Assembly: GCF_021869535.1 (NCBI RefSeq)
Contig: NW_026262604.1
Coordinates: 19,468,001 to 19,532,000, forward strand
DNA: 64,000 nt
Source of the DNA: Mytilus californianus
Lineage: Eukaryota
Direction: 5' to 3'
In this document: piece after piece, positions 17,691 to 61,953 of the stretch
Position numbering within the stretch: the stretch's first letter is position 1
Layout: every line of letters begins with the position of its first letter
The notes under the pieces: model-generated
Database searches by the model: none
The model's input: the letters and a program-made list of their open reading frames with translations, nothing else
What the model was told of the DNA's origin: nothing
Translations under genes and position numbers: made by a program

Positions 17691-20567
17691 TTGCACGTTT
17701 TTAGAAATATAGTGATCACAATTTATTCAAATGTCACTTTTGTCATAGTTACTAAAAAGTACTGAAATATGTGCATAGAAGTAGTTTCCGGGTGCTAATT
17801 CTTTTATTTCAAACGAATTTCGTATATGATCGCATAAAAGATAGAGACATCCCTATGGGTTATGAATTGCTATGTATAAGGTAAAGGCAAAAGGTAGACT
17901 AAAATTCGTACAGAAAAATTGTTTTATGATGCTTAATAAATACTATACTACTTATATATTATCATACATGATGAGGATAGATCCTTTTTAATTCAGACGC
18001 CATTCCGTCTAAGCTCAAAGTCATTGGTACATACACAGATTTTGTTAGACAATGTTACTGTCAAATCCTGTTAGAAGTGAATCATAACTTAATAAAATAG
18101 ATATAAAAACTATGCCATCAAGTCCCTTACAGCTTTTCCTCTTTATAAGGGGTGTGGTGATATGTTAGCTTGTTCACTTAAGGTTTTTTAATTTTGAGGA
18201 GTATATGACATCTGACCTACCATACTAGTATTACCTTTATTACGTTTTCTTGCTCAATGACCAAGCTTTTGTTGTTGGTTTTAAGAACATAATTTGAATT
18301 AAGAAATGTATTTAAGGACCATTTATCTCAGATTAAGACCGATTTAACTTTGTTATTAAAAACGTCTGTCCTTCAATATCCCATTTTCTTTAGAATTTAA
18401 AATGATGCTTCTCTAATGTAAATCATGTAGATGGAGCATATGCGTTGTATAGACACATTCTGGTTTTTTTAAGTCTGAAATAATATAAGCTCGGTAAACT
18501 TTTCGTGATAATTCAATAGTGAATTCAGTTTTACTTCCCTTAATCTATAGAATTCAATCTAGGCACTGATATATCAAAAGATTATATAAAAATAAGCATG
18601 TTATTGACAGGACATACTATAGTTTATTTCTAAGCAACAAACATTTTATTACATTTAAGTTCAAAAGTCAATGCCACCTATAATGATACAGAGTGTACCG
18701 GCATGCAAAATAATAAAATTGAATGTTAAAGGTTACCAAAATTAATATTGTCGAAACAACCAATTGTTGACATAATAACCGAGATCATAGGTCATCTTCA
18801 CTAGTAATAGACCAAAAAAAGGTACAAAAAAAGAAAAAGTAAAGATATTTATTATGTGTTAATAAGATAACATCACATTTTTCTGTTATTGGAGAGTTCT
18901 GTTGTTATCAACTTTACCTACAATCAGTATACAATATTTTCAAATACTGGAAACATTGAGAGAACATTAATAATGCATTACTGTCTACATCAATGCAGGA
19001 ATCCTCATAATTGCATAAGCAGAACAAATCATCGTGGGTAGGAAACATCAAGTCAAATCTACTCAAAAGAACATATAAGTTTTCTAATTGTAAATTGCAT
19101 TTTAATTCAGTTGCGATTGAAATAAAGGAATTTCATAAAACCAAGATTTTTGTGCTAACTAGAAATATGGTAATATGAAAAGAAATTGCGTACATATGAA
19201 GTGTTCGTTTAAATGTTTTACATATATATATATCGATTTATCGGTTGCTTTGGTCCAGCTTGTTCGTAATATAAAACCGGATCACTGCATTCAATATATA
19301 CATATATGTACATGTACCAGTGTCATTTTATCACTGATAAAGTGAAAAGTATATTATATGTGCACGTACGTTGCTTATTTACATAGTGTTTGAGTAATAT
19401 TAAAATCACACATTCAGTTGAAGACGGGTTCGCAGGAAAGAATCTCGAATGGTCAACAATTATACATCGCTCAAAGTAAATAATTATTTATTATAACATA
19501 ACAACTAATTTCAACAGTAAAAATAAATAACAATACATTGTCCGATTTAAAACAAAAGTATATGATTTGTCCTACGCTTCAGAATTTATGAACTGAACTT
19601 GACATTCACTGAACATGCTGAAATTGACATTGTTACATGGTCGATTTTGTGTGTTAAACATGTACACATTCAAGTTTTTAACTCGATGATTGGCGCCGTA
19701 GAAAATGGAGTTAATCCTGCTGTTCATGTTTGTCTGTAAGAAGACAATGGGTTTAATGCATATTGCAAATGTTTGAAAACAAACAGAACGTAAATTAATC
19801 TATAGTTCGCATAAGGTCAAGAAATACGACTGCAATACACATTCTGAGGTCACGCATGTTCATACAACACTCGTCAACAGCAATACACAAACGTAGTCCG
19901 GCAGTGGGCGGACTTTTAAAGCGATATTTGTATAGTATACAGATACAGCCTAGCGATATATGTTGGGCTGTAAATGTATGATAAGACACCCAATTGCAGG
20001 ATAAATACTTCTACAAAGAGCTTACAATACTTATTTCAGTTCAATGTTTTACCTGCAAGTTTTTGACTTTATGCCGTTGGTCAACATGATATTTGTAATT
20101 AATTTTAGTTACAGTTTTTTATTTTTAGATTTGTTTTGTTCAGAAATACCTCATTCTTGGTAATAAAAGTAAATAAAACGTTGGTTGCACATTACAAGAG
20201 TTACGGATTATCATGATTATGTACATAATAGAAATCTTTATTGTTGCACGACATAATTTCTTCATAACAATGAGGATATGATTTATAGTTACAATTGGTG
20301 ACAAAACACAGACAATATGATTGAAATATATAAACACTTGAAAATATATATGGCATCAAACTTAACAAAACTATCAAACCAGACAAGAATATCATTAAAC
20401 AGCACAAAATGTTAAAGATTTCTTTTATATATTGCGTGGCTGATATGCAATTTCAAAAGGTTTGCATAGCTGTACGTCTTTCTGTCTATCTTATTACTTT
20501 GATTTTCATTCTGCATTTAAATAATTGATTAATTAAAGCTCAAATTGCGGATAAATGCATTACAAAA

Positions 20568-20772: not shown

Positions 20773-20789
20773 AAAAATTTATGTTTTAG

Positions 20790-20919
20790 CTATGCCAAAA
20801 GGATATAACAGGCCACATTTTAGGAAAGAGAAATGAACATGCCCATATAGTATGCCAGAAATGCTGCAATAATTCTAATGTCTGTAATTATGATCAATCA
20901 TGTCAAAATCCAACAACAA
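20790..20919 (+). pseudogene. Copy A LU1 exon 3: LCQKDITGHILGKRNEHAHIVCQKCCNNSNVCNYDQSCQNPTT
   Basis: AG/GT bounded, CC-x4-5-CN three-finger terminus, paralogue of 59483-59612. Confidence 0.85.
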
Positions 20920-21085: not shown

Positions 21086-22746
21086 TTCCAGGACAGACAT
21101 GTCTATCATGTGATAATGTAGACAATCCGTAAGACTGCAATAATTCAATGGCATGTGCAAAAGAAGAGGTATATCTAATTCAATATATGTATTTTAAATA
21201 GTGATATTCACAATTCAGCACTTCTTCGGAATGACCGTTGACAATACTGAAACGCCATACCCATCAATTCAAGATTATTGATATGAAGAAAAAAAGAGCG
21301 GCATATGACCGTTTACACCAGGTTGAAAAAAAAAATATTTATCCGTTTTGGGGGTTAAGATATAACAGTAGTACAATTTGGTATCATATTGACTAAGATA
21401 CGTGGCTTCTTACATTATATAATTCAATATATATATACACGTATTCGAATACAGTATTTCACTTTGTTGTAGGTGTGTTTTCTCCATAAGTTTATGACTG
21501 AGACGCAGCATGTGAAATATGACCTCGGTTGCAAACATTCAACAGTATGATAAGTTCATTGGAAAAAATAAAGTCATGCTAGTTATAAAATAGATTTTAA
21601 ATTTTAAAAACTCTGATTTGCTTAACTAGTTTTTTGAAGTATGGAGTGTACTTAGAACAGATTTGAAGATAAGAAATAAGGATAATAATATCATTTTAAC
21701 AGCATCCTCTTGTTTATTTTCAAATTAATTTGATTTTTGAAAACAATTCAAAAAACAAACAAAAACAAAAATAAAAATCTAAAAAAATCTAATATCATCA
21801 GATAAAATTATCTCGAATTAAATAAAAAGCAGCATGTCTAAGAGGTCGGCAGGCTTCTTTTTTTTACCAATGTCCTTTGATTTATTTTGCTGTCAATATT
21901 AACTGCCTTTTGTTTTACTTTGCTTCATTATTGTATTAGGTCTTTCCATTTTTCTGTGGAAAGACCTATTGTATTTGTTCTGATTATTACTGTTTTTTTT
22001 CTTCTTCCGCCAAACCCTTTTCTTGCGGTATAAGGTTGTTTCGCAAGATGTCGCTTAGATATTTTGGATATTATATCGAACAGTTATTGCACTTTTAAAA
22101 CTCATTTTGTTAAAACGAAGACTTTTTTATTATTGTAAAAGTTATCTCCCCAAACACTGTTTCTCTTGTGAGTGTATCTCCTCCGTAACCAAAAAAGATA
22201 ACGACAAAATTCTTTTTCTTATTTGTTCGTTACATCCTCCAAATTTTTGGCTTATTTGGATCGAAGCGATTTGGTGAAATCTTAAAGGAGTTATGATTTT
22301 GTAACTCATAAACCGTAAGCCGTATAAACCTAGAGTCTTTTTATTTGAAATGTTTAGAAAATTGATGTGGAAAGACCTTCAATTGTCCTCTGAACAATTG
22401 GTTTTCAATTTGTTTTATTTTTGTCTTCGTTCCAGATAGAAAAACAAAATATGCAACATGAAATCAGGCAAACACTTCTTTTCTGAATGACAATCGTACA
22501 TATCATACATGTATTATGTTTTTTTCAATTTTAACTTTTTTGTTTATTACAATATGCTCATTAGATCCACTTGCCTGAATTTATGATTTATAACTAAACT
22601 GTCAACCTTTTCGTAGGTATGCCGTCATGGTTCAAGTATGAATGTTTTTGGTCGCCGAACATCTGCTAGCAAAATTTTAACATGTGAAAACTGTTGTAGT
22701 GGAACAGAGCTTTGTAACGTTGACCTCCAATGTGGACACCAGGCGC
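21086..22746 (+). pseudogene. Copy A LU2 (three exons: 21086-21168, 21473-21544, 22617-22746)
   Basis: PGQTCLSCDNVDNP*DCNNSMACAKEE / VCFLHKFMTETQHVKYDLGCKHST / VCRHGSSMNVFGRRTSASKILTCENCCSGTELCNVDLQCGHQA, with canonical splice sites and phases 1-0-0-1. Confidence 0.85.
21934..22405 (+). mobile_element. Helentron-associated non-autonomous element (HINE-like)
   Basis: 5' hairpin AGGTCTTTCC..GGAAAGACCT, 3' sub-TIR GGAAAGACCT (22369-22378) followed by stem-loop CAATTGT-CCTCTGA-ACAATTG, in T-rich flanks. Confidence 0.7.
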
Positions 22747-25005
22747 GTACGTTGCTAAAACACAATTGTATACAACAGCGCAATGCATGGCAAAACATAA
22801 TCATTGTGATTTGAAATGGAATTTTCTATTATTTACATTCTAATTTAGTTTGGAATCTCATAAAGCTAACTTTATCAAACACACGAAAAGATAAAACATA
22901 TCAATTGTGTTTATAAAGTTAGAGTAATAAATGATTTAAATAGAAATACCATGCATTAAGGAATTACTGTGTTGATTTATTATTGCGATTTGTGGAGAAT
23001 GGGCAAAAATGCAAGATTAAATATTGCAATTTCAGGAAAAGCTGCATACAGATATACACGTAAGCAGAGGTTACCATAATGCGAGTTCTGGTTATTGAGA
23101 TATTTACCTAGTCACATTATACGCATTAATAAAAGCCTCGCAATAGTTTCTGAATTTATGAGTCTTTAAATGCAGAAAAGGCAATGATGTGTAATGCCCG
23201 TCAATAAATGAATGTGAATCATTTGTTCAACTAGACTCTAGCAATGTGCTTCAATCGGGTAGTATTGGGACAATATCATTAATAATACCTGCATGAAAAG
23301 TAAATTAGTTTATATTGTTTTGGGGCGGTTTCTCACGCTTTAACCCATGTTTCATCCAAAATTTTCTCAAGAAAATACCTGTACTAATCCAAGACTATGA
23401 CACTTGTTGACTTTTCGTTCCGTTGGTTGATATAGTCAGGCTTTATGGAATGCACTCTTTTTGAATTTTGCATGGAGTTTGGTATTTTGGCTTGCAATTC
23501 CAAAATTCTGAAATTCGAATAAAATAGATAATACTAATGCAAGAGTATCTTTTTAATCGAAGAAAAAGTTTTTCAATTAATAATAAATGTGTCTTTTCAT
23601 CTTTCTCAGATCATTGGTCTGGATCTTGAAATTCAAAGTTTTTCTGGATGTGTGGTTATCACTGCCCTTCAACTTCGTTTTATCTTATCGATTTCCTACA
23701 ACTGTAAATCTATTGGCACGTATGAGTCCCATGTAGACGAAACGCGTGTTAAGTGTATTTAATTATAAGCCTGACTTAGCTGGTGAGTTTTACATGTTTT
23801 CAGCTTGGTATTCTTATTATATGTCCTGTAAATACTTCAGACAGGCTGTTGCATTTAATTTTGTCGAATTTTGTAGCACGTTTCAAATAATTTTGAACCC
23901 ACATTTTTAGTCGTTATGCCGGCTATTTATACTAAAATTATCGTAAGTAAGGAGAGATAACGGTTGCAATAACCCTTGATATGATGTTATTGATAGGAAT
24001 GATTTTTCGTTATTGAAAGGTATTCATCGAAAATTGATGGATGGATAATTAGATCCTCGATTAACATAAACCTATAAATATTCCTTGTATATTCGTGATG
24101 ACAAAATCTCAAAACAGTACGGATATATCCAATTTTTTACTGCTCCGAAGAGGATTGAAAAAAACCGGACACACTGTTATGGCTCAGAACCTGCCAGTCT
24201 TTTTCCTATTTGTTAAAAAAGAAATCTTTTAAATGTTTGTTTTGAGCACAGGACCACGACTTTGTACATCATCAATGAGAATAGAAATGACCTGGTTTGT
24301 AGTAAGCGTCACTTAACGACACAAAAAACAAAACAAACCTGAAATAGATATGTATGCATGAAGATTTATGTAAGAATATATTGAGGTTAAGCACATATGT
24401 TTTTCTATATGTAATCCTTCTATAAGTGACCTTCATGCGTAAAAAGCCTTGAAGGGAATACGTGATATGCAAAAATGAAATTGCATAACATCAGTCCTAC
24501 AATACAGGTAAGAGATCAGGAAACTGTAAATCAAAATCATCTTTAATTTCTTTTTTACAAAAGTTTGTATTGTATGAGTAAAAAAACAAGAGGTGAGCAG
24601 TATCGCTTATGTTATTATCATGAACATATTGAGCATATTATTCTCATACAGTAAAATTCGTTAATAAAAAAACATTGAGAATACGCAGAATAAGTTTCTT
24701 GAAAGACAAAAGCCAGCTACAACTTCTGATAAGAATTTTACATGAATATTCTATTTGGGATAGAATAATAGAAAAAAAAAAACAAAGGATATGAGGTATC
24801 CATCCATAACACAATGCCCATTTCTTCTGGTAATACTTTATGTTGATGCTCTGTTCATTCATGTTTGTTCTTAGTTGTTTATACCTATGAGATGATTGTT
24901 GCAATTAAAAAGGCGAAGTTTATTTCTTTTATATTTAATTAAATGAATATTTCACAAACTCCACACAATAAAAATATCTGTTGATTGATTTTTTTTATTT
25001 GATAG

Positions 25006-25124
25006 GAGCCAGGGAATGTGCTGACCTAGCAATAACAAACGATGGTATATACACTATATACCCAAGCGGTAATACTCAACCAGTTCTTGTTTATTGTGCA
25101 GTACGTCAACACGAAAATTGGACT
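25006..25124 (+). pseudogene. Fibrinogen-related domain, first exon
   Basis: RECADLAITNDGIYTIYPSGNTQPVLVYCAVRQHENWT matches the FReD start (RDC...DGxYxIYP...VYC...WT). Confidence 0.85.
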
Positions 25125-27175: not shown

Positions 27176-27342
27176 GCAATGAGGATATTCATTTAAAATC
27201 TACAAACGGTCGTCACGAATTAAGTATATATATGGAAATAATAGATACAACACATCACACAGCCAATTATTCCACATTTAGAGTCAGTGATGAAAATCTT
27301 TGTACGTTCTGACAGCTTCAGGTTATAGCGGAGATACTAAAT
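27176..27342 (+). pseudogene. Fibrinogen-related domain, middle exon (frameshifted)
   Basis: NEDIHLKSTNGRHELSIYME...ANYSTFRVSDEN[fs]LYVLTASGYSGDT; acceptor at 27175, donor GTAAGT at 27343. Confidence 0.8.
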
Positions 27343-29874: not shown

Positions 29875-30011
29875 ACACAATTTTAATCCTGTATCTATGA
29901 TGAGTTTATATAAGCTTATTCTGTCTCTCTTTCTGATTTTTCTATTCCATTTGATAATTCCTTTATGATTAGTTACATCAGTTTTAAAACTATTTGTAGT
30001 TGACTGCATAG

Positions 30012-30241
30012 ACACTGCTGATGATTACTACAAAGCTAACGGTAAACTTTTACAAATAAAGACAGGGACCATGACAAGTACAGTGATAACCTGGCAGTAA
30101 CATTTACTAGTGCTTGGTGGTATAGTCGGAATATGTATTCAGACTTCAATAGAGCATATTCAGGTTTACAGGCACAATGGTTTGGGCGTCTTGGAGTGCT
30201 GCTATATCGAAAAGTATAATGTTGATTAAAAGAACTAATTA
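30012..30241 (+). pseudogene. Fibrinogen-related domain, last exon (frameshifted)
   Basis: NGK[fs]FTNKDRDHDKYSDNLAVTFTSAWWYSRNMYSDFN...[fs]SAAISKSIMLIKRTN*. FT-KDRDxD and WWY are FReD hallmarks; the conserved Cys residues are lost. Confidence 0.8.
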
Positions 30242-47000: not shown

Positions 47001-50000
47001 TATTTAGAAGAAAATAAAAATTTTGCAATGTTTCACTTTATAAAGGGGCATAACTCTAGAACAGTTTAAGTGACGCCACCAAAATTCAAACTTGATCTGT
47101 GTTTTGTGGTAATAAGTATTGTATATAAGTTTCATAACATTTGGTTGAGGCAAACTTAAGTTAGAGAACGGAAACTAAAAATTTTGCAATTTTTCCATTT
47201 TTAAGGAGCATAACTCTAGAACGGTTTAAGTGACGCCACCAAAATTCAAACTTGATCTGTGTTTTGTGGCGATAAGCATTGTGTATTTATAAGTTTCATA
47301 ACATTTGGTTGAGGCAAACTTAAGTAAAAGAACGGAAACCAATTTTGGGACGTACGTACGTGCGTACGTACAGACGGACAAGGGTTAAACTTAATGCCCC
47401 CACCGCTACGGCGTGGGCATAAAAAGCTCTATAACAACATGAACAATATGACCTCTCATATAAAACAAAAAGTAAGACCAGATGCTCCTGACTAGTCAGC
47501 ATTACTTGATCCATTTATGGTACCTGTCATGTAGTGCAGCACCAAACACAACTTTTATTGCAAAACTATGGTTATCACAATACTATAATAAATACATGTA
47601 CATGCAGCATAAGCTTTGACAAACATCTTACAACATTGTATAAAAAAGTACAAATGTAATATAATGAGAGTCACTTCATCTGTGTCCTGTTTGTATTTTA
47701 AAGTTTCTGTTTCACTTCAATGAAGTTGAAAAAGGAAGATTTCAGCATGCTGTCTCCTGAAAAAAAAGGAATGTTGGGATTGATTTTGGGGGTAATGGCC
47801 CTAACTTTTTCGGAAAAAGGGGCCAACATCAAGTAAATACTTTTCTAATACTTCTGTATATGAATTGCTTATTTATAGATCAATTTAATTGGGTTTAAAT
47901 CAATACTTTATTCTTCTTTGGGGTTTTTATCAAAAATTGAATTCTTGGGATTCTTTGATAAGCCAAATGTAACTGTATATTCAGAATCTTAAGTATGGGC
48001 CCTGTTTCTAAATTGTTCCACATTAAGGCCCTCAAGGGTCTAAATAAAACTTTGTTTGATTTCATAAAAAATCAATTATTGGGGTTCTTTGATATGCCTA
48101 TTATTCTTACCTCATATTTATATTTTTATACACTGCCAAAAAATTTTGGAGTCGTATATTGGTATCACTTTGTTATCTGCAGTGTCAGAAGACACCTAGT
48201 TTCCGGACAATAACTTTAGTTTAAGTGAATGGATCTCTATGAAATTAACCACAAAAGGAAGGTTGGGAATGATTTCGGGGGTTATGTTCCCAACTGTTTA
48301 GGAATTTAGGGCCTAAAAAGGGGTCCAAATAAGCATTTTTATACTCCCGTTTATGGGACATATTATGGTATACTGTTGTCCGTCTGTCCGTCCGTCCGTC
48401 GTCAACATGTCGGACTTTAATTCAAAAACGCTTTAACCAATATGCATGAAACTTTGGTGAAGTGTTTATATCTATTGACGTGAGCTCCCTTTTGTTTTTT
48501 ATAAATTTGGGATTTACGTTTCAGAGTTTTGGGGTTTTATTCATTAAAAAAGGGGGGATTTTCCAGTTTTGGGACAATAACCCCAAAACAATTTCACCAA
48601 TTTGCATGAAACTTTTGTGAATGTTTTATATCTATTGACGTGAGCTCCCTTTTGTTTTTTTATAAATTTCTGATTTACCGTTTCCGAGTTTTGGGGTTTT
48701 ATTTAGGGATGTCAACGAGTACTCGAGTACTCGAGTATCGCTAGTTAGTACCGAGTATCGAATACCAAAACGATACTCGACTAATCAGTTTCCTGTTAGA
48801 ATGTTGTTGCTTTCTTAAGCTTAAACAAAAATATTTTTATTGAGAGCGCCTCCTAGAAAATAAAATATTAATCAATATTAAAATATGTCTCGAATGTGTG
48901 CGTTTAATTGTCATTTTAAATTCCTCCGAACAGAGGTAGGCTATGAACAAGAGCACCTTTCCAATGCTTACACTTTTAGTCTTATAGTCATTCCCCCTCC
49001 CCCACCTCTGTACCGTCAGAGCAAATATTTTCATCAGCAGGAATGTTAAATACGTAACAAAGGCATCAATAAGTTCTAATCATTACCCCTTTGCTGACCA
49101 TTAAATGTGTTTTTTTACGATTCCCAAATACTGTTGTTTGAGTAATCATTTTTCTAAAGATGTGTTTTAACATGATTAATTAATTGATTAGATTATTGCC
49201 AATTTACTTAATTGGTACAAGTAGTAAATGAGCTATTAATTATTTTATAAAATTCCTGGAACAATTATCTAGTCCTAGGTAATATTGTTGAGGGTTTTAC
49301 GTTAAGAAAACGACAAACAATACATAAAATAGGTATGATTTTGTGTTTCCATTTTGTAGATGTTTTTCCGAGCGACTACTTGAGTATCGCTCGGTAAATC
49401 CAACGAGTACTCGATTAGTAAATCTTTATCGAGTTGACATCCCTAGTTTTATTCATTAAAAAAGGAGGGGATTTTCCAGTTTTCTGACAATAACTCAAAA
49501 ACAATTTCACCAATTTGCAAGAAACTTTGACGACATGTTCATTTCTATCGACATGAACTCCCTTTTGATTTTTATAAATTTTAGACAATACGTTTCCGAT
49601 TTATGGGGTTTTATTCATTACAAAAATGGGGATTTTCCAGTTTTCGGACAATAACTCAAAAGTTATGAAACTTTGGTAAATTGTTTATATCTATTTTTGT
49701 AAGCTCCCTTTTTATATTTATAAATTTTTGAATTTAGGTTTCCGAGTTATAAGATTTTATTTGTTTATAGTCTTGACAACAGATTTACTTAGCATTGCGC
49801 AACAGCACAGTGTTTTGCACAACAGCAAAAAATCTTTAATTAAATATCAATTCAATTCATATAACCAATTTCAAGTTCTTCGACTTCATTTATTCAGAAA
49901 CCTATAATATGTCAAATATCTTATTACAATCCAAATTCAGACCTGTATCAAGCTTGAATATTGTGTCTATTTTTGCCCCAACTGTTCAGGGTTGGACCTC

Positions 50001-53000
50001 TGCGGGCGTATCCAGCTGCGCTCAGCGAAGCAGTTTATCCTAGTTTCCAGAAAATAACTTGTGTGTAAATGTATGGATTTTTCTGAATTTGTACCATAAG
50101 GTTCCATACCAAAAAAGGAAGGTTGGGATCGATTTTGGTGGTTATGGCCTTTTCTGTTTAGGAATTAGGGGTCAAAAACAATATTTGTATAAATTGTTTA
50201 TTTCTTGACCAATTTCAATAGGGTTTTATTCTTGAATTTTTGGGGTTCTTTAATATGCTGAATCTAACCGTGTATAACGTTTTTGGATTTTGGGCCCTGT
50301 TTTTAAAGTGGTCCACATTGAGATCCAAAGGGTCCAAAACTAAACTTTGTTTGATTTCATTAAAAATTGAATTATTAGCGTTCTTTGATATACGAATCTA
50401 TCCGTGTATTTAGATGTTTGATATTTGGTCCTGTTTTCAAACTGGGATACATTAAGGTCCGAAGGGTCCAAAATTAAACTTAGTTTGATTTTAACAAAAA
50501 ATATTCTTGATTTCTTGGGGTTCTTTGATATGCTGAATCTATACATGTATTTAGATTTTTGATTATGGGCCCAGTTTTCAAGTTGGTCCAAATTTGGGTC
50601 CAAAATTAAACTTTGTGTGATATCAACAAAAATTGAATTATTGGGGTTCTTTGATATGACGAATCTATTCGTGTATATAGATTTTTAATTTTTGGTCCCG
50701 TTTTCAAATTGGTCTTCATTAAGATCCAAAGGGTACAAAATTAAACTTAGTTTGATTTTAACAAAAATTTAATTCTTTGGGTTCTTTGATATGCTGAATC
50801 AAAACATGTATTTAAATTTTTGATTATGGGCCCAGTTTTCAAGTTGGTCCAAATCGGGGTCCAAAATAAAACTTTGTTTGATTTCAACAAAAATTTAATT
50901 ATTGTGGTTCTTTGATATGCTGAATCTAACTGTGTTTGGATTTTGGGCCCTGTTGTCAAATTAGTTAACATTGAGGTCAAAAGGGTCCAAAATTACACTT
51001 TTCTTTTATTAAAAGATAAACTTTGTTTGATTTCTGACATCAAAAATATAATTAATGTTAGTCTTTTATTTGATATGCTGAATTCTAACCATGTATATTA
51101 AGAAATTGTTGAACATCCTTACATATGATATTGTTTAGTTCTTTTTGAATGACAACTGTTACCTGCATGATTTTCTATTTATAGAATTTATACACATATT
51201 CACAAGATAGCGAGGGGCAAGTTAGTACAGTGTGCAGCAGTCAAGATTCAAGTTGGAGCCAAGGGGACGAAGCATTGCCTCTTAAAGAAATCCAAATTGC
51301 TGATATCAACAAGGCTATTTATGTTCTAGGTCAAGGTTGTATCAGTCCACTTAGATCAAAGCTGAACACAAATATAGATAAAGCAAAAGACAGAACCATC
51401 CGATACTACAAAAGAAAGGCTGAGGAAACATCTGAAGCTCTATATAATGCTATTGCACCTAAACAAGGAACTAAACTAAGGAGAATTTCTGATCAGGTTC
51501 CAGTAACGAAAGGTGATGATGACCTTCTTCATGTTGTTTCCCAGATGTGCAAAAGTATAAAGGATGCAGATGTAAAGTGTCAACTTTTGTCTCTTGTTGT
51601 GAACCAGTTTTCAAAGACTGATTTGTTGACATGGATTCCTGAGATCACAAAATATCAAATAGATAAAGCCAGAAAACATGCATTTGTTAATGGTCCTGGC
51701 TCATGTATACAATCTTCAAAGACACAACAACATAGAAAGAGAATAAACTATGTCATGTTACAGCATGCTGTAGAATTCTTCAGTGACCCATCTTTCAACC
51801 AAATATCTTCTTACACTACCCATGACCTAAAATTAGACTCGGGAGATATTCTTGTTATCCCAGATGTTGTTAGAACAGTCATCCATTCAAACTTGATTAA
51901 ACTGTATAAACTCTACTGTGCCGACAATGATTTCAATCCTCTAAGTGACTCAACACTGTATCAAGTTTTGAATGCATGTGAAGCATCCAAAAGGAAGTGC
52001 CTTAAAGGTTTAGACAACATTGCTGTAGATGGCACCACAGCAATTGACAACATTTTGTCCTTAATTTCCAAGCTGAACAAAACAGAGGACTGGAAGAGTA
52101 CATTTAAGAGCAACATTTTAAATAGTAGACTGTACTTAAAAACAGAATACAAACTGCATATAAAAAGAGAAGATGAATGTGCCTTCCATTGCCTGCAGTA
52201 TTCATTAAGTGATCCAAAAGTTGGTGCCCTTAGTGTTGGATGTGAACATGCATCAAAAGGCATGCGACAGATGTCTGCTGCTTGGAGATATTGTTGAAGA
52301 AGTTCGGTTGGCCATTTTATCCAGCTGTCCAGAGGATCAAAAAGCTTTCCTCCAAGACCTGGAAATATCAACAAGGCAGATTGAGGACTGGAGATCTCAC
52401 ATCTTGAGAACAATCTACCAAGATGATGCCAGGTTTGATCTTCTGAACAGCATACAAGGCAATGAAGTAATTATTATCATGGATTGGGCAATGAAATACC
52501 TTCCACAGATGTTTAGGGAAAGAATGAAAGATTTCTTTGGTCAAAAAGGGATGCACTGGCATGTGTGTGTTGCCATTTTTAAAGATGAAGACAACAGTTT
52601 AAAGGTAAGAGTAATATTATTTAAATGATAATCCTATTTACCATTATAATGAACCTAAATGTCATCAAACATGGCAGCCATTATTACTGAAAATTTAAAA
52701 TATATATATGCAACAAAAATCTTGAAAAACTCTGTAAACAAAAATATTACATTACAAAAATTATTATTGACCAAACAGCTAAAAGTGGCCCATTGATGAG
52801 GAAAAACTACAAGTAATGCAAAAAAAAAAAAAATCTTTAAAAAAACAATTGTTACTGAATTTCATGGAAATAATTCACCAAGCTTGGCCACCAAAATTCC
52901 TTAAAGGTGTAATACCACCATTGATTTTTCCCTATTAGTCTTTCTTAAATTTGCACTTTTCAAAAAATTGTGCAGAATTTATCTTTGTTTCAAATAAAGA

Positions 53001-56000
53001 AATACTTGGCATGAATAAAGTTTTATCATGTCCAGTACTACAGAAAAAATTTCACATAACATTTTATTGCATATAAGAAAATAACCATCACTGGAAGTTA
53101 ACCAATCAAATTTTCCCCCTTTTTAAACCTGTGTACTAGATTTAGTAACCATGTAACCTCAAGTTTCCAAAATATTTTATAGAAACCCCAAATAAAAAAA
53201 TAATGGTGCTTTGAAATACCCAAGATATATGTTTAAGACCCAGAAATGTTTTACTGCAATGAAATGTAGGATCAATTACCTACAACTGTCAAATTCAAGG
53301 GAATATTTTTTCCGACCTATTTTCGTATGCAACCGGATGTGACGTACTATGATTTGGTGGCATTACACCTAAACAAACATTTTGTTCCAAAATGATTGGA
53401 CAGTAACATGATGGCTGCATGGAACATAGTTAGGGAACCAACAAACCCTATGGGAAATTTTTTTAAGTACACATGTATGCTTTCACCAATCTGAACCAAA
53501 CTTGATAAGAATGATATTTGAAAATTCAATAAGTTTGTCAGTTACTTCGTTATCAAGCATGGTTAGGTCTGCAATTTCCCTTGAGTACTCTGGATTCCTA
53601 AAACATTGGCATTGGTGACCAATAGATAAATAAATCCATTCCCCATTTCCATTCTCAATTTTATTTATATTAAATGAGAAGACCTCATTTTGCGTGTTGC
53701 TTCTCTTTTTTCCACAATAAATTAATTATCAACCATCCGTGTCCTAACGGTACCATGCACAGTCGCATTTGTCATTCTCTTTTATGATTATTCAGTTTCG
53801 GTTATTTTGAGAGAAAAACGAAAATAAGGCGTCCAGATATTGTTTCCGTCATTGGAAAGATTTTTAAGTCATAGACAAGACTTCCGTTATATTTAGGACT
53901 GTGAAAACAACAAATAGTTTTGATAGATACTTGGGAACAGGACAATTATTTTTGCGTTACATATTCTATAAATAGAGTGTATTTGCTATTTACTGTTGGT
54001 GACACAGTGGAAAGTAAACTTTGAAATGATAGTAAATAGGAAATACACTTTATTTATAGTATATGTATGTTCATAGTAACAGAAGAATTGAATAATAGAA
54101 AACAAAAAATTACGGATTTTGGAAAAAGGAGGATGAAAGAAAAAAATTGTAATGTCAGCCTACAGAAGTTTTACATACTTTAAACCACGGTCTAAATTAC
54201 AGCTATTTCGCAGGTGTGTTTTAGTTTTATTTATTTGTAGAAAGTCATATTAAACACCATCCATACTTTGACGGTATACAATAAGAACTGATTTTTATTT
54301 TAGCACAAGACCTTTACTTATATAATGGACCATGTGAAGCAGAACTTCTTCGGTGTTTTATCCCTGTTGGAGCACACACTATCTTCTATTAAGAAACCGT
54401 TACCACAAATCACAGAGGCATACCTTAGATCTAACAACGCTGGTTGTTACCATTGTGGTCAGCTGTGGCTAGCAATACCAAGTTTGTCAGAATGAACAGG
54501 TAATATTATATCACTTTCACCGAAATACAAATATGGAGTTTTTTAGGATTTTGTTTTGGTACCATGCCCAACATAATAGGAGAGGGAGGGCATAGAAATA
54601 ACAGTGAGTTATGTCCCTTGGAAATGTTAATGACATAAATTCCTTTGTAAGGGCTCCCACATATACCATAATTGCTAGGTTTTTATAAAACTTGTATCAA
54701 ACATTGTCAAATGCTTATTCAAGAATGAGCAATTTCTGGGAAAAATTATTACAAATAGTTCAAGGTAATATTCTTTACAAAACACACAAATGTCATTATT
54801 CACCTCAAAAGCTAACAAAACCTTTAAACAGACTTATTAAGAAGGGATATGGTTATGATACTGTTGTCAGGTCATTAAAGATTGCATATTTTGGCTTTAA
54901 TATTGATTCACTTATAGGGTCTTTGCATCGGAATTAAACACATTTATTCTAAAACCAGTTGTTGGCATGACACGGGTTATGTTCTTCTCATATATTTTAT
55001 GACGGTTTAATACTAAACCCCTAACAGGAGGGATTGTGCCCGATATTCATATGATGAAGACATAATCTTGTCATAATGTCAGTAACTGCTAGTAGTCTGT
55101 TGTTATTTATGTATTATTGTCATTTTGTTCATTTTCTTTTGTTTCCTATTCTGACATCGGACTCGAACTTCTCTTATACTGAGTTTTACTTTGCGTACTG
55201 TTGTGCGTTTGTTTTTTCTACATTGGCTAGAGGTAAAGGAGGAGGGTTGAGATCTCAAAAAACATGTTTAACCCGCCGCATTTTTGCGCCTGTCTAATGT
55301 CAGGAGCCTCTGGCCTTTGTTAGTCTTGTATCATTTTTAATTTTAGTTTCCTGTGTGTAATTTGGAGTTTAGTATGACGTCCATTATCACTGAACTAGTA
55401 TATATAATTTGTTTAGGAGCCAGCTGAAGGACGCCTCCGGGTGCGGAATTTTCTCGCTGCATTGAAGACCTTGGTGGCCTTCAGCTGTTGTCTGCTCTAT
55501 GGTCGGGTTGTTGTCTCTTTGACATATTCCCCATTTATTCTAAATTTTATACATGTATATCCTGCTCCACATTTGTAAATTTTAATCCATCTCCAACATA
55601 AAGATAAATTAAGGAACAAGTGAAATGTACTGTAGGATAATATACCCTTTTAAAGGAATTTTAAAATTGGTGTATTTGCTGGACCAATTCACTAACATTT
55701 AAAGATGAATGCGAGGAAAAAATAAATATTTGAACTTCAAGCCAGTTTGTGTTAGTATCACCAAGATGTTGTTCACACTCGTTACAAAAAGTAAGTTTGT
55801 CAGGGTCATCTATCTAAAAAAAAAAGAAATAAGGTCAAAAGACACTACCATAAGCCCTCTCGACCAATCATATTATCTTATTCCTTAATATGATAATCAT
55901 ATAAGAATTATTGCAATATATATGTTTACTCTCATCAATGTTTGTAGGTTGTATCTTTATAAATAAAAAAAAAAAAAAGCATTATTTATTTTTTTAGGGA

Positions 56001-59000
56001 TACAAATCAAAAGTTATGATTATAGTGAGGCCCAGAGTGGCAAAAGCTACTGTGATCCTAAAATTGCCCATATGAGACAAAAAATGAGAATTTTCTCTGC
56101 AGAAGGCCATAACATCACTACAGCTATGCAGATGAAAGAAGCGATTGATAGTGGAGCTGGAGTTAAAGGAGTTTATGCATCAGTTGTTGATGTTGATACA
56201 AGAAAGCATCAGCTTAAAACACATTCTTGGAAAGGTGTAAGCTTTATCATGAATGTAGATTACACAAGTTCTGGAATAAAAACATGGAAAGCATACAGAA
56301 TAGGAGATGGTTGCTTTATCGAGAACAACAAGGTAAAGCAAATGTTTCGCGGTGAACAACCAGCTACTTGTTTACAGATCATCAGTGATGACTTTCAAGA
56401 TCATGAGTCATCAGGGCATATCAATCTAAAACAAGGAACATCAGCAGAAATTCATGAACAACATGTATCATCCAACCAAACTGCCTTTGCAAATGAACAA
56501 AGTTCCTCATCATCAAACCAATCAATAGTCATAGAACAACAAATTCCTCAATCATCAAATTGTACTACAGTCTTAGAAGAATTGGACACTTCCTTACAAG
56601 ACCATGAAGGCAATAATGTTGACAACGTATTCTATTGCCCAGAGTATGGCTGCACTAAGGCTTATCAGTCATTTGAAAAAATGCAAGATCACATTCTCAT
56701 TGGAAAACACTCAAAACAACTATTAAATGACTCAACTTATGACAGAGCTAAAAAGATATGGGCTGAAAAATGTGAAAATCTTCATGCTTCTACTCATGTC
56801 ACTATTGAATCGGATCCTGGAACCTCTAGCAGCAACAATTTCAATATACCTGCAATGGGTTGGGCATTAAAGAAAGAGAAAAAGTATGTCAGATTTTCAC
56901 AGAATGTGAAATCATATCTTACAGAATTATTTAAGATTGGAGAGGCTAGTGGCAAGAAAGAAAATCCAGCAGCTGTTGCTATGAACATGCGTAACATGTC
57001 AGATAATGGAAGACGAAATTTTTCCCCCAATGAATGGTTACAACCTAGCCAAATTGCATCATTTTTTTTCAAGACTTGCTATAAATGCAGGAAACACAAT
57101 AATGTGTATACACAGCTGTGATTTAGATGCTGGTGACAGTGATTTATTGGCCGTGCTGAATGAATTAGAGAATCCAGAAATCCATGAAAAATTACATTTA
57201 TAGTCAATCACTCTATTTGTCTGTTTGTAACTAAATCTTGAAGACATTTTATTTCACTATGACAAAATTTCAATGTGAGGGATATCACTCGTTTGGCTTT
57301 CATTGTTTGTACTTCAGTCGTCTGAACATAAAGTTTTGTAAGAAAGTTTATTGAAAGGTCATCTATAAAATTCACATGTTTTTATGCCCCACCTGTGATA
57401 AACACATTGGTTTTCTCACTCTTACTTTATATAAGTTAATTGATCTCTATGAAATTTTACCATAAGGTTAAATACCACAAAAGGAAGGTTGGGATTGATT
57501 TTGGGGGTTATGGTACCAACAGTTAAGGAATTAGGGGTCAAAAATAACTTCCAGACATAACTTGTGTATTAGTATATGGATCTCTCTGACATTGTACTAC
57601 AAGGTTCCATATCACAAAGGAAAAGCTGGGTTTGGGTTTGTGGGTAATTGCCCTAAACGTTTAGGAATTAGGGGCAAAAAAAACAAGCATTTTTCTAGTT
57701 TCCCGACAATAACTTGTGTTCAAGTGTATGGATCTCTCTGAAATTGTACTGCAAGGTACCATACCACAAAGGGAAGGCTGGGATTGAGTTTGGAGGTGAT
57801 GAATCATAAGGGGGTTCAAAAAATTTGGGGGGGATTTTTTTTTCCTTTTTTTTCTTTAAAATTTTCCATTTTAAATTGGTGATTTCTGATTAATATATAA
57901 AAGCAAATAATGATGATATGGTTTGAATAGGTAAATTAATTTTTTTTAAGTTCTTATACCACATTCATTCTGTGTCAGAAATATATGCTGTGTCAAATAT
58001 TTAATAACAATCCAAATTCAGTGCTGTATCAAGCTTGAATGTTGTGTCCATACTTGCCCCAACTGTTCAGGGTTCGACCTTTGCAGTAGTATCAAGCTGT
58101 GCCCAGCGGAGCATTTTATTTCCAATTTTATTTTTCCTCTAAAGCTATAGATACATATATATATAGTAGCTTGATGCAAGGTGTAGTTAGATTAAATAAA
58201 TTAGAAGGATGAAAACTACACACCCTCAAGATATCATAACAATCTGACTATCTTTTGGATTATGGCATATGAAATGTGAATTTTTTAAAAAGTGATTTTT
58301 GAAATTTTTTGCCTCCAGTTTGAGCTATTTAGGCTGTGGGCCTCTAGTTTTTAATCTTTTAAATACTCACACCCATGTAGACAACTGATTGTTTATGTTG
58401 CCATTAACTTATAATTCTAACCAAGTTCATGTTATTTTGCTGGTCTTCATTGTATGAAGCATTGTATTGTAAAATAGCAAAAAAAGGGTTCCGATGATCC
58501 CATTTTTTCTGAAATTTTAGCAGTTAGGCAATTTGTTGAAGGTCATTATATTAAGGTCAAGGTCATCAAATGTTGAAAACAATTAACAGAATTGATAACT
58601 GAAGTATTTGATTGAAAAATGTTTTGATTCAGTTTACTTAAGTAAATATTTTTTTTAATTGTCAATTTCAAGGGTCAAAATGGTTATTTGTTGTGCCGTG
58701 AAATTTGAAGTTATTTTAATAAACTTTTTTCCGGCAAAAAATAAAAAAACACGATTTTTTTTTCATCAAAATATTCAAAAACAGCATTGTTTTTAATATC
58801 AATAAATGAAATGTTCCTGTGAATGTGTTTTTTTTTAAAACCATTGTTCAAAAATGTCAAAAAACAGCCTTTATGGACAATTTCGCTTTCTCTGATTATA
58901 TGTTCAACAGAAAACATTAGTGTTAACATAGAAAGTAAGATAGGAGATGTTCATGTATAGAAATGCATTCTTAAATGTAACTTTTTATCATATACTTTAG

Positions 59001-61953
59001 TTGTTTTTGCCATTTCTTACCTGGATGTGATTATTTTGCATTCAAAATATAGTCAAATTAGTGAATTTTGATGTTTTCAATGACCTTTCAAGCAGTATTA
59101 CCTTATCTTGCGTTATCATGGAAACGGTAAAAAATTAAAAAGATTTGAACAATGAAAAATTATAATATGGGTAAGGTGTTATAAAAAGAGAACTTAAGAT
59201 GCAATTTTGTGATATCAATGTACCATGCTCTACCTGACTCTTAGCTGGAACAGTACTTAAATATTCATATTCTAATTTTTTATCTAAAGCATTGGTTAAT
59301 CAAAGAATAGTTTCTTCATGTTATTGGCTGAAAGTAACTTAAAAAAAGATTTTTGAATCTGAAAATCTTAAACTTTTTCTTAACATTTTTATAACTCCAT
59401 TCTTATTTTGTCCACAAAGAATTTGTGTATGAAGTATTTTTCTGAAATCAATGTGTTTTTGATTAACCAATCTGTTTTGCAGCTATGCCAGAAGGATATA
59501 ACAGGACATATTTTCGGAAAGAGAAACGAACATGCCCATATTGCATGCCAGAAATGCTGCAATGATTCTAATATCTGTAATAACGATCGTTCATGTGGAA
59601 ATGTAATAACAAGTATGTAGCTAAGTTACACCACTTTATATTTATATGAATTAAACATATTATAAAGTATGTTTATCACAGTCTGTTTCATTAAAAAAAA
59701 ACAGTTATAAATTATGAATAGTATTTTTTAAGATAAAACACGTAATGAGAATTTGTTTTTCAATTTCAGGACAGCAATGTCTATCCTGTGATCATGTGAA
59801 CAATCCGAACATCTGTAATTACACAATGACATGTGATAAAGGAGAAGTAATCTTTAAGTTTGACATTCTTCTTTTACTTAGGAATCAAAGCCAGGTTCTA
59901 ATTGCAATAGAACATATGCTGCAAGTGATTGACGTCACAATTGAAATTTCGAACAACACGTACGCTCCGTATAAAGATATCAATACTTACACAGCATACA
60001 CATGTTAAAATGAGCATAGAACACGGCACGACATTACCATTTTTAACAGATTTCAACTTCGCTAAAACAGCTTCGACTATAGACAAAAGCAAATCACTTT
60101 ACCTATTGATTTGGTTCGGAAGTGTACAGCAACAGACCTCATGTCATTTCAAAATATATATATATATATGAATGGGAATAAATGAATGAAATCTCTGAAT
60201 AGCTCTGCAATCACAAACGGTGTATCAACGGAGACGTCGGGTCATGCAACTTAAACATGTCGGTGTTGTGGGGTGATATAGGTAGCGTTTACAATTTTTA
60301 CATAACAAATGTGCTTTGTTAGTAACTGACGGTATAATATTGTTTATATATAAATCTTCCTATATCTATCATCATAAATACCAGGATTGAAATTTCATAT
60401 TTGCGCCAGACGCGCTTTTCGTCTACAAAAGACTCATCAGTGACGCTCGAATCAAAAAATGTTATAAAGGCCGAATAAAGTACGGAGTTGAAGAGCATTG
60501 CGGACCTAACATTCCTAAAAGTATTATATAAATACAATATTTAAATACAGAATTTCGATTTTTGCAGGTGTGTTTCCTCCATAAATATTTGACCGAAACT
60601 CAACATGTAAAATATGACCTTGGATGTAAGCACTCATCGGTATGTAACACTGAATAAGGACAAACAATGCCATGCTACATTGTAGCAATACAACATTTGT
60701 ATAATAAACTCGAATTTTTGAGTTTGAAGTAATTTTGAGATCATCTTCATGATTGCAAGTTATTTTATTTGAATATGAGTTTTAAAATAATTAGAAGAAA
60801 AAACTACCATCCAACAATCAAATGTTGAGCCCATTTTCGAACATTGCTCTTGTCTCAACTTTAAATGCATTTCAGAAATCAGAAGATTTTAATATCATCT
60901 TCACCAGTGACCTTTAATTATTTGCTTTCGTATGTTGTCAAAACATTCGAACTCTTTTTTCCTTAATTAGTATATTCAAACACTTGTTTTGTTAACATGA
61001 CATATCAAATTTTTCTGAACTGTTCCTTATTTTATAAATGTCTATGTCGTATGTGTATTCGTGTTTTACTCAATTTCTGTAAATTATGATATGTTCATCG
61101 ATTCCCTATTTCTAAATTAATCATTAATTTCTGTTCTTTCTATTTAAATGTAGTTATGTCTTCATGGTTCAAACACAAATATTTTGGGAAAACGAACATC
61201 TTCTGGCAGACATTTGATATGTGAAAGATGTTGTGATGGAACAGAGCTTTGTAACCTTGACCTCCAATGTACACACCAGCAGCGTAAGTATTTTTTCTGA
61301 TTCACAAACAAACACATAAAAATCACATAGCATTGTTAAACAAACATATGCATTTTGTTTAAATTTACACTTGAAATTTATAATGGTATGAATTAAAAGA
61401 AGAAATGGCATTTACCTTGTATTTTTGGCTTTGAATTCATCGATTTGATTTGATTTTTGGTGTTTTAACGCCCCTTTTAAGCACCGCTTTTGGGCTATTT
61501 CGTGGCGGCCAGTTTTTATTGGTGGAGGAAGCCGGCGCGCCCGGAGAAAACCACCGACCTTCGAAAGGAAAACTGACAATCCTAGTCAATTAAGATTGGA
61601 GTCGAGTGCACCCGCACGAGCGGGGTTCGAACTCACAACCTCAGCGTTGACTGGCTAGTGATTACAGTAGTAACTACTTAGACCACTCGGCCACCGCGGC
61701 CCCTTGAATTCATCGATAGGTGAATCATATGACTGTATGATAAAGTAAAGCATATAATAGATGTCTGAAAATTTTTACCAAAGCATGGAATATAGTAATG
61801 TTTATGATTTTTACAATTTTTTTAATATAGAAAAGACGATGAATGCGTCATGTAGATCAACGAATGAATGTGGCAGCAACCTCGTATGTTCGATTGAACA
61901 ATGTCGATGTGCTTCAAAAGATGATTTTTGGGACAATAAATCCAGCATTAAAA
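34970..61953 (+). CDS. Copy B: secreted LU-LU-EB(-probably FReD) protein, 8 exons in the window, 3'-incomplete
   Basis: Exons 34970-35015, 36696-36778, 40503-40574, 59483-59612, 59770-59846, 60568-60639, 61154-61283 and 61831-61953 join in one open frame (~244 aa) with canonical splice sites; paralogous exon by exon to copy A. Confidence 0.8.
36696..36778 (+). CDS. Copy B LU1 exon 1 (SERVCYSCSSLKEGEKCQHVMSCNKDE)
   Basis: TTATTAG|AC ... GAG|GTAATA; the CxxC...C...C pattern matches LU2 exon 1. Confidence 0.8.
37420..37630 (-). mobile_element. Family C repeat inserted into a family E copy (37165-37415 and continuation)
   Basis: Reverse-complement match to 144-340 and 17605-17690. Confidence 0.8.
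38141..39420 (-). mobile_element. 5'-truncated Penelope-like retroelement (degenerate RT)
   Basis: Minus frames give YWIPKLH, KTFDFSTLYTTIPH, IPMGTNCAPLLADLF, RFIDDV and GRYQYLVDKYSVSTSQIIHDGLDV*, with many frameshifts. A two-copy ~105-bp direct repeat follows at ~37885-38100. Confidence 0.9.
40503..40574 (+). CDS. Copy B LU1 exon 2 (ICFVQKYFTLGNETRYDFGCTYQE)
   Basis: TTTTTCAG| ... |GTAATC; 72 nt; paralogue of 20129-20200. Confidence 0.85.
43015..43170 (+). mobile_element. Truncated HINE family F (TTTTTATACGACCGCAAAA...)
   Basis: The 5' end matches 44584. Confidence 0.7.
44584..45676 (+). mobile_element. HINE family F, full length, with an internal tandem array
   Basis: 5' hairpin TATACGACCGCAAAA-AAA-TTTTGCGGTCGTATA, a (GTC)n stretch, internal degenerate repeats, 3' sub-TIR GCGGTCGTAT and a terminal GC hairpin before ATTTT. 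Confidence 0.8.
46250..47425 (-). mobile_element. HINE-like element carrying a ~160-bp satellite array
   Basis: The minus strand starts TTTTTATGCCCACGCC..GGGGGCATTAA, then a GTCC/GTAC microsatellite, ~6-7 units of ...GGGCATAACTCTAGAACGG..., and a 3' palindrome GTGTCCACATGTGGACAC. Confidence 0.8.
48121..50035 (+). mobile_element. Nested HINE-type elements (family F plus a second HINE starting ~48339 with a (GTCC)n microsatellite)
   Basis: Family F start at 48121 and family F-type 3' end at ~50030; the inner element has its own ~150-bp repeats. Internal boundaries are approximate. Confidence 0.6.
48704..49445. mobile_element. hAT-type MITE, 742 bp
   Basis: TIR TAGGGATGTCAAC / GTTGACATCCCTA; perfect 8-bp TSD GTTTTATT (48696-48703 and 49446-49453); subterminal (CGAGTA) repeats at both ends. 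Confidence 0.9.
50230..51100 (+). repeat. Satellite-like tandem array, ~125-140-bp unit
   Basis: About 7 units of TTCTTTGATATGCTGAATCTA...GGGCCC...GTCCAAAATTAAACTT. Related sequence occurs at ~47930-48110. Confidence 0.85.
52905..53370. mobile_element. Kolobok-like MITE in a transposase intron
   Basis: TIR AGGTGTAATACCACCA / TGGTGGCATTACACCT; TTAA is present on the left side only. Confidence 0.6.
54690..55550 (+). mobile_element. Penelope-like RT 3' fragment (54690-54940) followed by repeat sequence including a family C copy (55330-55550, minus)
   Basis: GNILYK..SPQKLTKPLNRLIKKGYGYDTVVRSLKIAYFGFNIDSLIGSLHRN* resembles a PLE C-terminus; the family C part matches 37420-37630. Confidence 0.65.
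57380..58118 (+). mobile_element. HINE family F copy, 5'-deleted
   Basis: Highly similar to 44655-45676, including the 3' end. Confidence 0.8.
59483..59612 (+). CDS. Copy B LU1 exon 3 (LCQKDITGHIFGKRNEHAHIACQKCCNDSNICNNDRSCGNVIT)
   Basis: TTTTGCAG| ... A|GTATGT; paralogue of 20790-20919. Confidence 0.85.
59770..61283 (+). CDS. Copy B LU2 (exons 59770-59846, 60568-60639, 61154-61283)
   Basis: QQCLSCDHVNNPNICNYTMTCDKGE / VCFLHKYLTETQHVKYDLGCKHSS / LCLHGSNTNILGKRTSSGRHLICERCCDGTELCNLDLQCTHQQ; no stops. Confidence 0.85.
60403..60446 (-). ncRNA. Minimal type I hammerhead ribozyme motif (second family)
   Basis: Minus strand GCGTCA-CTGATGA-GTCT-TTTGT-AGAC-GAAA-AGCGC-GTC-TGGCGC: intact core, stems I and II paired, one stem III mismatch. 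Flanks match 29740-29910. Confidence 0.8.
61445..61703 (-). mobile_element. Full-length tRNA-derived SINE (Meta/MESC-like central domain)
   Basis: Minus strand GGGGCCGCGGTGGCCGAGTGG (A box), GAGTTCGAACCC (B box), GGTGGTTTTCTCCGGG..GCTTCCTCCACCAA and an (AAATC)n tail; 14-bp TSD TTGAATTCATCGAT (61431-61444 and 61704-61717). A degenerate copy lies at ~62790-62910. Confidence 0.9.
61831..61953 (+). CDS. Copy B EB/EGF-like Cys-rich exon
   Basis: KTMNASCRSTNECGSNLVCSIEQCRCASKDDFWDNKSSIK; phase 1-1; homologous to the decayed exon at 23176-23299. Confidence 0.8.

Follow-up and report, generated by a model that had tools for sequence, protein, structure and literature searches.

A probable tandem pair of three-finger, EB and fibrinogen-domain lectin paralogs in Mytilus californianus, one of them apparently a pseudogene

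In invertebrate humoral lectins the recognition head is usually the fibrinogen-related domain (FReD), and mussel immunity relies on very large and variable families of soluble lectins. The fibrinogen-related proteins (FREPs) of gastropods such as Biomphalaria glabrata combine one or two immunoglobulin superfamily (IgSF) domains with a FReD, and they form an expanded, lineage-specific family for which somatic diversification has been described. The proteins discussed here likewise place a lectin-type FReD after small disulfide-rich beta domains; however, these N-terminal domains are of a predicted three-finger and not of the IgSF type, so that the two arrangements are analogous and not homologous. 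We analyzed a stretch of 64,000 nucleotides (nt) from the mussel Mytilus californianus (NCBI RefSeq assembly GCF_021869535.1, contig NW_026262604.1, positions 19,468,001 to 19,532,000 of the forward strand; hereafter the window). Two diverged copies of an exon series in this window, copy A and copy B, correspond to tandem Ly6/uPAR-like three-finger (LU) domains followed by an EB/EGF-like module and, in copy A, by a FReD.

The initial annotation took this association for an unrecognized combination and possibly a new class of pattern-recognition receptor. That view has to be given up: gene models of this kind are public for four Mytilus species, and a mollusc three-finger protein with a fibrinogen-like domain has been reported as a domain architecture new to three-finger proteins (PMC13719153, Acta Naturae 2026, Fig. 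2B(5)), along with a combination of LU and C1q. The protein in that report shares LU and FReD with the ones considered here; the one sentence of text devoted to it mentions neither a tandem LU nor an EB stalk, and the likeness is one of descriptions only. Besides this paper, our search of the literature on three-finger and fibrinogen-related proteins in bivalves found none that combines both. The locus is a further, partly dead member of a known but uncharacterized family, and not a new receptor class.

The closest relatives are the Mytilus gene models VDI03422.1, XP_063408749.1 and XP_071139519.1/XP_071139520.1, which have the domain order, the exon plan, the Gly-Lys/Arg-Arg loop and the Cys-less FReD found here. 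In contrast to these, copy A is disabled, and copy B is seen to its first EB exon only and contains, unlike M. edulis, a transposon-bearing intron of 18.9 kb. A second group of Mytilus proteins carries a homologous LU followed by a FReD, but differs in having one LU, no EB stalk and a canonical FReD with its disulfide. With Ly6/uPAR proteins in general, the Mytilus LU domains have in common the predicted fold, an N-terminal CxxC, a CC-x5-CN motif and a multi-exon domain bounded by phase-1 introns, whereas they have 12 cysteines instead of 8-10, an extra C-terminal Cys, no glycosylphosphatidylinositol (GPI) signal, no match to the Pfam LU models and a fusion to a lectin head.

Two probable paralogs of a Mytilus gene family

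The window has a G+C content of about 32% and no runs of N, and its two exon series, both on the plus strand, were recognized by six-frame reading and self-comparison (Table 1). Very probably they represent a tandem pair of old paralogs of a Mytilus LU-EB-FReD family, copy A being dead and copy B open, under selection, and continued by a FReD beyond the window. The exon-3 peptides of the four Cys-rich domains have ten invariant positions, including the CC and CN, and those of copy A match those of copy B with E-values of 3e-24 and 2e-18, far beyond chance. A profile of these four peptides, with the exons left unjoined, was searched against 1.84 billion proteins and matched 36 of them; all named matches in the 20 clusters that were looked up belong to Mytilus galloprovincialis, M. 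edulis, M. trossulus or M. coruscus. The public entries VDI03422.1, XP_063408749.1 and XP_071139519.1/XP_071139520.1 bear only the names 'uncharacterized', 'hypothetical' or 'Fibrinogen C-terminal domain-containing'.

Among the intact relatives, VDI03422.1 of M. galloprovincialis (P0003, 588 amino acids) is a predicted protein with two LU domains, four EB modules and a FReD, and XP_063408749.1 of M. trossulus (P0046, 604 amino acids) adds a signal peptide and extra EB modules to the same layout. In both orthologs the FReD matches the full Pfam profile (E-values 9.4e-49 in P0003 and 6.2e-38 in P0046). The Pfam EB model recognizes four stretches of P0046 (25.2 bits, above the cut-off of 24.3) and scores 21.6 bits in P0003. 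Three exons encode an LU domain; an EB module takes a single exon, with phase 1 on either side, and the number of EB modules varies from zero to about six among the relatives. The succession of predicted three-finger domains in tandem, an EB-type module and a FReD holds as one gene type.

Other family members depart from this plan. P0009 consists of three tandem LU domains alone. P0012 (XP_076111664.1 of M. galloprovincialis, 'neurocan core protein-like') carries the LU module together with a pair of EGF domains and a domain of the C-type lectin kind (Pfam Lectin_C, 1e-17), so that the LU cassette has been paired with more than one lectin head. In the single-LU subfamily one LU directly precedes a canonical FReD, and these proteins are annotated as 'microfibril-associated glycoprotein 4-like' (e.g., XP_071140473.1 and XP_076072755.1). 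Complete open reading frames (ORFs) of 318-340 amino acids for such single-LU-FReD proteins lie on contigs of about 1 kb, which are most simply explained as single transcripts of this subfamily.

The comparison of loci ties each copy to a relative in another species. Upstream of copy A, window positions 10973-14811 match positions 4-5048 of the M. galloprovincialis sequence UYJE01001602.1 (L002), which lie upstream of the P0003 gene; the first exon of copy A is collinear with L002 9661-10080, and the other copy A exons follow in order. Since the locus is collinear, flank included, copy A is the positional ortholog, apparently a dead one, of VDI03422.1. Copy B is matched exon by exon by a gene in the M. 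edulis sequence OY782966.1 (L001), and it is the ortholog of XP_071139519.1/XP_071139520.1 (P0037, P0001). The bounds that had been assigned to the whole arrangement, 20041 and 61953, fall on exon borders: LU1 exon 1 of copy A starts at 20040 and the EB exon of copy B ends at 61953.

Table 1. Exons and exon remnants of copies A and B, in positions of the window. Phases are those at the start and the end of the exon.
Copy	Feature	Positions	Strand	Phase	Remarks
A	homolog of P0003 first exon	18993..19073	+		tblastn with P0003 residues 1-27, 70% identity; in-frame stop at 6th codon
A	LU1 exon 1, remnant	20040..20110	+		DNA alignment with copy B, L001 and L002
A	LU1 exon 2	20129..20200	+		in-frame TAA where P0003 has Tyr; donor GT changed to TT
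A	LU1 exon 3	20790..20919	+		open; CCxxxxxCN motif; 80% identical to copy B (E 3e-24), 86% to P0003
A	LU2 exon 1	21092..21168	+		TAA at 21130-21132, AAC in copy B; tblastn with P0003
A	LU2 exon 2	21473..21544	+		open; 88% identical to copy B, 84% to P0003
A	LU2 exon 3	22617..22746	+		open
A	EB/EGF-like exon, decayed	23176..23299	+		compared with copy B, 1-nt and 7-nt deletions and a 9-nt insertion
A	further EB exon, possible remnant	23573..23665	+		tblastn E 0.002 in restricted region; weak, with stop and insertion
A	FReD exon 1	25006..25124	+	1 to 0	open; Pfam Fibrinogen_C positions 3-48; 59% identical to P0003
A	FReD exon 3	27176..27342	+		1-nt frameshift in A run near 27295; Pfam positions 74-118
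A	last FReD exon	30000..30242	+		1-nt frameshifts at about 30047 and 30166; stop codon 30240-30242; Pfam positions 151-187; ficolin-2 alignment
B	signal peptide, inferred	34937..35015	+	0 to 1	ATG to GTAAAT donor; homology to hydrophobic P0007 N-terminus and to a stretch of L002
B	LU1 exon 1	36696..36778	+	1 to 0	weak Pfam Toxin_TOLIP match, E 0.0078
B	LU1 exon 2	40503..40574	+	0 to 0	100% amino-acid identity to M. edulis
B	intron	40575..59482	+		18.9 kb; transposon-like ORFs and repeats
B	LU1 exon 3	59483..59612	+	0 to 1	RNA joint 59612 to 59770
B	LU2 exon 1	59770..59846	+	1 to 0	RNA joints on both sides
B	LU2 exon 2	60568..60639	+	0 to 0	RNA joint in X7
B	LU2 exon 3	61154..61283	+	0 to 1	RNA joint 61283 to 61831
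B	EB/EGF-like	61831..61953	+	1 to 1	Pfam EB E 0.0013, below cut-off

The M. galloprovincialis locus contains one A-type gene, and the window contains the A pseudogene followed by B, which suggests that the copy number at this locus differs between species or haplotypes. An exon resembling a signal-peptide exon, homologous to copy B 34937-35015, is present at L002 14992-15046 and is not used by the VDI03422.1 model. That model begins at a far upstream exon that encodes no signal peptide, and its 5' end is therefore probably mis-annotated. In both related loci a minus-strand gene with SH3 and AIG1 (GIMAP-like GTPase) domains comes next after the family member (L001 37775-39432 and L002 39157-44184).

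Copy B and its predicted fibrinogen head

All eight exons of copy B are open, with AG/GT at each border. The domain order up to the EB exon that the initial annotation gave for this copy is confirmed, but the start of the gene was missed: it lies at 34937 and not in the cluster near 59 kb, and LU1 exons 1 and 2 lie at 36696 and 40503. Because the 18.9 kb intron separates LU1 exons 2 and 3, the first three exons are found 19-25 kb upstream of the cluster at 59-62 kb; in M. edulis the same intron measures about 650 nt (between L001 exons 10761-10832 and 11485-11613). Rule-based scans of the window recognized no signal-peptide exon, and that of copy B was found only through homology to P0007.

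RNA contigs of two related mussels (runs X1 and X7) connect 59612 to 59770, and likewise 61283 to 61831, by GT..AG joints; a third joint was placed at about 59844 to 60566. Three of the predicted copy B junctions are therefore in use. Compared with M. edulis, copy B has a synonymous divergence (dS) of 0.37 and a nonsynonymous divergence (dN) of 0.056, and the resulting dN/dS of 0.15 (225 codons, sums over exons) indicates that copy B is under purifying selection. Beyond the EB exon the X1 contig runs 372 nt further and the X7 contig 241 nt, neither extension having a placement in 61954-64000; the EB exon is therefore not the terminal exon. The M. edulis ortholog has four FReD exons beyond its EB exon, from which it follows that the FReD of copy B should lie outside the window. 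In L001 two more EB exons and FReD exons 1-4, all of them open in tblastn, lie 4-15 kb downstream of the first EB exon; the FReD exons begin about 7 kb past it, and the EB-like and FReD exons lie at 18.2-29.4 kb of L001. Copy B, too, most likely has further EB exons and four FReD exons, located several kb beyond the window.

Several observations speak against this picture of copy B. We found no FReD-like sequence in 61954-64000, and its FReD exons are not in the window. In X21, the one RNA run of the source organism, of which about 6% was read, no reads fell on copy B exons. The EB exon of copy B encodes five cysteines, the sixth being present at the aligned position in copy A and the orthologs, and its score against Pfam PF01683 is 19.2 bits, with a cut-off of 24.3. 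The exon, called EB-like in the initial annotation, may be read as an EB/EGF-type module; the M. trossulus relative reaches 25.2 bits, and copy B itself falls short of the cut-off. In the M. edulis RefSeq isoforms XP_071139519/20 (299 and 301 amino acids) the last FReD exon immediately follows the EB exon, which leaves only a partial FReD (Pfam positions 134-191), and P0005 has two LU domains and ends after its EB module.

The alternative that survives best draws on these observations. It holds that the copy B protein has no working FReD, either since it ends soon after the EB module or since the EB exon is spliced to the last FReD exon, and we regard it as unlikely, though serious enough to be weighed. 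XP_071139519/20 have exactly the latter structure, P0005 provides an example of the former, and skipping from EB to the last FReD exon leaves the frame intact, all exons involved being phase 1. The 372 nt after the EB exon in X1 would fit the last FReD exon plus a 3' untranslated region about as well as three exons. Against this alternative, the EB and FReD exons that lie in between at the M. edulis locus are all open in their tblastn matches and are therefore probably used, the M. trossulus and M. galloprovincialis models contain a whole FReD, and one third of a FReD is unlikely to fold. The possibility that copy B transcripts end without a FReD had been raised by the initial annotation; the X1 and X7 contigs go on beyond the EB exon, and the M. 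edulis isoforms have a partial FReD. A copy B protein completed by a whole FReD remains the reading we prefer. The two open EB exons and three open FReD exons that XP_071139519/20 skip (L001 10001-29432) are covered by a second model of 255 amino acids; possibly the M. edulis gene has been split or its annotation is incomplete.

The long intron of copy B contains ORFs at 51230-52297, 52209-52628 and 56072-57121, none of which matched a Pfam family. A Cys-rich open-frame repeat family is present in three copies, at 44.3-45.7 kb, 49.9-50.2 kb and 57.4-58.15 kb; the copy ending near 58120 has an RNA depth of about 1660 in X21 and loose ends rich in poly-A/T. Repeats that resemble short interspersed elements (SINEs) derived from transfer RNA occur at 61435-61700 and 62800-62920, with a loose-end consensus that contains GGGATTCGAACTC. 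These SINE-like repeats have very high depth in all RNA contig sets and cause spurious joints, e.g., 61600 to 62887.

The apparent decay of copy A and its fibrinogen exons

For copy A the initial annotation had proposed two LU domains, an EB module and a FReD in compatible phases. The order and the phases (phase 1 at both the EB donor and the FReD acceptor at 25006) were borne out, all on the plus strand; the reading frame, however, is not open but disabled many times over. In LU1 exon 1, 17 nt around the acceptor are gone, and the exon has further deletions, a frameshift, a stop and no GT donor. The EB exon contains two in-frame TAG codons within its match to P0003 235-260. The match of FReD exon 3 to P0003 448-505 falls in two frames, and that of the last FReD exon to P0003 509-587 in three. 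In total we count four in-frame stops that arose by base substitution (one of which needs two changes), two lost GT donors and at least five frameshifting indels; exons are missing, and the intron-exon layout is retained. The second FReD exon (the VIQRR to EYWLG stretch, about positions 48-74 of the profile) was not found by search. For the other EB repeats of P0003 no match was found in copy A, except for one doubtful remnant out of the three further EB exons. A signal-peptide exon for copy A was not found either. Against Pfam PF00147 the FReD is incomplete, with three fragments at 15.6-23.1 bits; the exon matches to P0003, those of the FReD included, reach E-values of 1e-10 to 1e-21. From these lesions we conclude that copy A (18993-30242, plus strand) is a predicted pseudogene that has retained its introns. 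A stretch at 25291-25420 was considered as a decayed FReD exon and was rejected; it has no support and looks like a short repeat.

An alternative interpretation, which the initial annotation had allowed, assigns the FReD exons at 25-30 kb to another fibrinogen-lectin gene or pseudogene, separate from copy A and downstream of it; we think this very improbable. In its favor, the link between the EB exon and the FReD of copy A was read from genomic sequence, stand-alone FReD genes are many in Mytilus, and the 255 amino acid model of M. edulis, which begins at an EB exon, was called separately. However, the FReD exons of copy A show 59-70% identity with P0003, where the FReD is fused to two LU and four EB modules, and both share the unusual Cys-less variant of the domain. 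The entire unit is collinear with the P0003 locus including the upstream flank, the EB donor and the acceptor of FReD exon 1 are both phase 1, and no signal-peptide exon was recognized between 23.3 and 25.0 kb. The collinearity of the P0003 locus contradicts a separate gene, and the FReD exons are best assigned to copy A.

Against the pseudogene reading it may be said that the lesions of copy A were read from the assembly sequence alone. Two of the three FReD frameshifts lie in A or T homopolymer runs, where errors are typical of long reads, and these two may have arisen in the consensus; no such explanation holds for the stops made by substitution, for the lost donors, for the larger indels (7 nt and 9 nt in the EB exon) or for the missing exons (FReD exon 2 and most EB repeats). 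The assembly shows no comparable damage in the eight exons of copy B or in two nearby ORFs of about 350 codons, and a functional copy A that merely appears broken through assembly or consensus errors is hardly credible.

Domain structure and possible function

The assignment of the N-terminal domains to the three-finger fold, made in the initial annotation, was supported by structure prediction. Twelve cysteines, a CxxC start and a CC-x5-CN near the end form a framework that fits the four domains of the window as well as 44 from relatives, and the C, CC and CN positions are invariant in the alignment of the domain. From 29 aligned sequences (first row P0037:86-178, the M. edulis ortholog of copy B LU2), AlphaFold2 gave a model with a mean predicted local distance difference test (pLDDT) score of 81.9 and a predicted template modeling (pTM) score of 0.74. 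The best 50 matches that Foldseek found for it in the PDB are all LU, receptor-ectodomain or elapid three-finger-toxin folds. At the top are PSCA, GPIHBP1, Lypd6b, Lynx2, uPAR, the ectodomains of BMP, activin and TGF-beta receptors, and elapid toxins, with template modeling (TM) scores of 0.57-0.67. Three results count against this assignment: the Foldseek E-values are all above 0.001; the Pfam LU models matched none of the N-terminal domains in the window beyond one weak hit of Toxin_TOLIP to LU1 exon 1 of copy B (17.4 bits with a cut-off of 21.2, E 0.0078); and no match to UPAR_LY6 or Toxin_TOLIP at E 0.1 or better was obtained with the whole relatives. A Ly6/uPAR three-finger fold of the N-terminal domains is nevertheless supported by the predicted model.

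LU exon 3 of all four domains (20790-20919, 22617-22746, 59483-59612 and 61154-61283) encodes a Gly-Lys/Arg-Arg motif. Among the 29 relatives Gly63 is invariant and Arg65 nearly so, and the only stretch of low confidence in the LU model, residues 56-63, lies just upstream of the motif and reaches it. The motif could be a convertase site, an amidation-type site or a binding loop.

The FReD also has a distinctive feature. In ficolins, tenascins and tachylectin 5A a disulfide flanks the acetyl-binding pocket (NCA...C). Where tenascin-R and ficolin-1 read NCA and NC or DC, P0003 reads NRA and ND, and both cysteines of the pocket disulfide are replaced in copy A, P0003 and P0037; the residue after the second Cys differs as well. 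The single-LU relatives retain the disulfide (NC...C), which makes the Cys-less FReD a trait of the subfamily with two LU domains. The absence of the two cysteines from copy A had been considered as a sign of its decay, and this was rejected because the intact orthologs lack them too. With both pocket cysteines and the following residue replaced, the ligand preference of the two-LU proteins is likely to be unlike that of classical FReDs.

P0046 has a signal peptide, copy B an inferred one, and the product would be secreted: a signal peptide, two LU domains, an EB/EGF-like stalk of one to several modules and a C-terminal FReD. By analogy with other humoral lectins, the FReD may act as the recognition head, its binding pocket altered by the absence of the disulfide. 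The EB stalk would serve as a spacer, whose length may shift through gain or loss of in-frame exons; because each EB module is one phase 1-1 exon, such changes do not break the frame. The pair of LU domains could provide a second interaction surface, through which the proteins would associate with one another or dock on a partner of haemocyte or microbial origin, much as the IgSF part might in snail FREPs. The LU-EB-FReD protein may function in pattern recognition.

More speculatively, and with little confidence, we suggest that Mytilus might possess modular humoral receptors in which one LU cassette with 12 cysteines was placed before alternative lectin heads through phase-1 exon shuffling. 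The heads may be a FReD here, EGF and C-type lectin domains in XP_076111664.1, and C1q according to PMC13719153. The LU cassette, with its exposed invariant Gly-Lys/Arg-Arg loop, could then be a shared effector, docking or cleavable element, and if this were the case, the Cys-less FReD of the two-LU proteins would have a ligand specificity unlike that of the classical acetyl-binding FReDs.

As the Pfam models miss the LU domains, the family has been hidden under names such as 'MFAP4-like' or 'uncharacterized'. In practice, its recognition corrects the annotation and yields a defined set of intact orthologs on which functional work can build. For the biology of the mussels, the locus points to a branch of lectins restricted to Mytilus in which three-finger domains precede the fibrinogen head, in the place taken elsewhere by coiled-coil, collagen or IgSF regions. 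It also illustrates rapid turnover within this branch: one paralog, still intact in M. galloprovincialis, is apparently dead here, and an 18.9 kb transposon insertion has lengthened the other.

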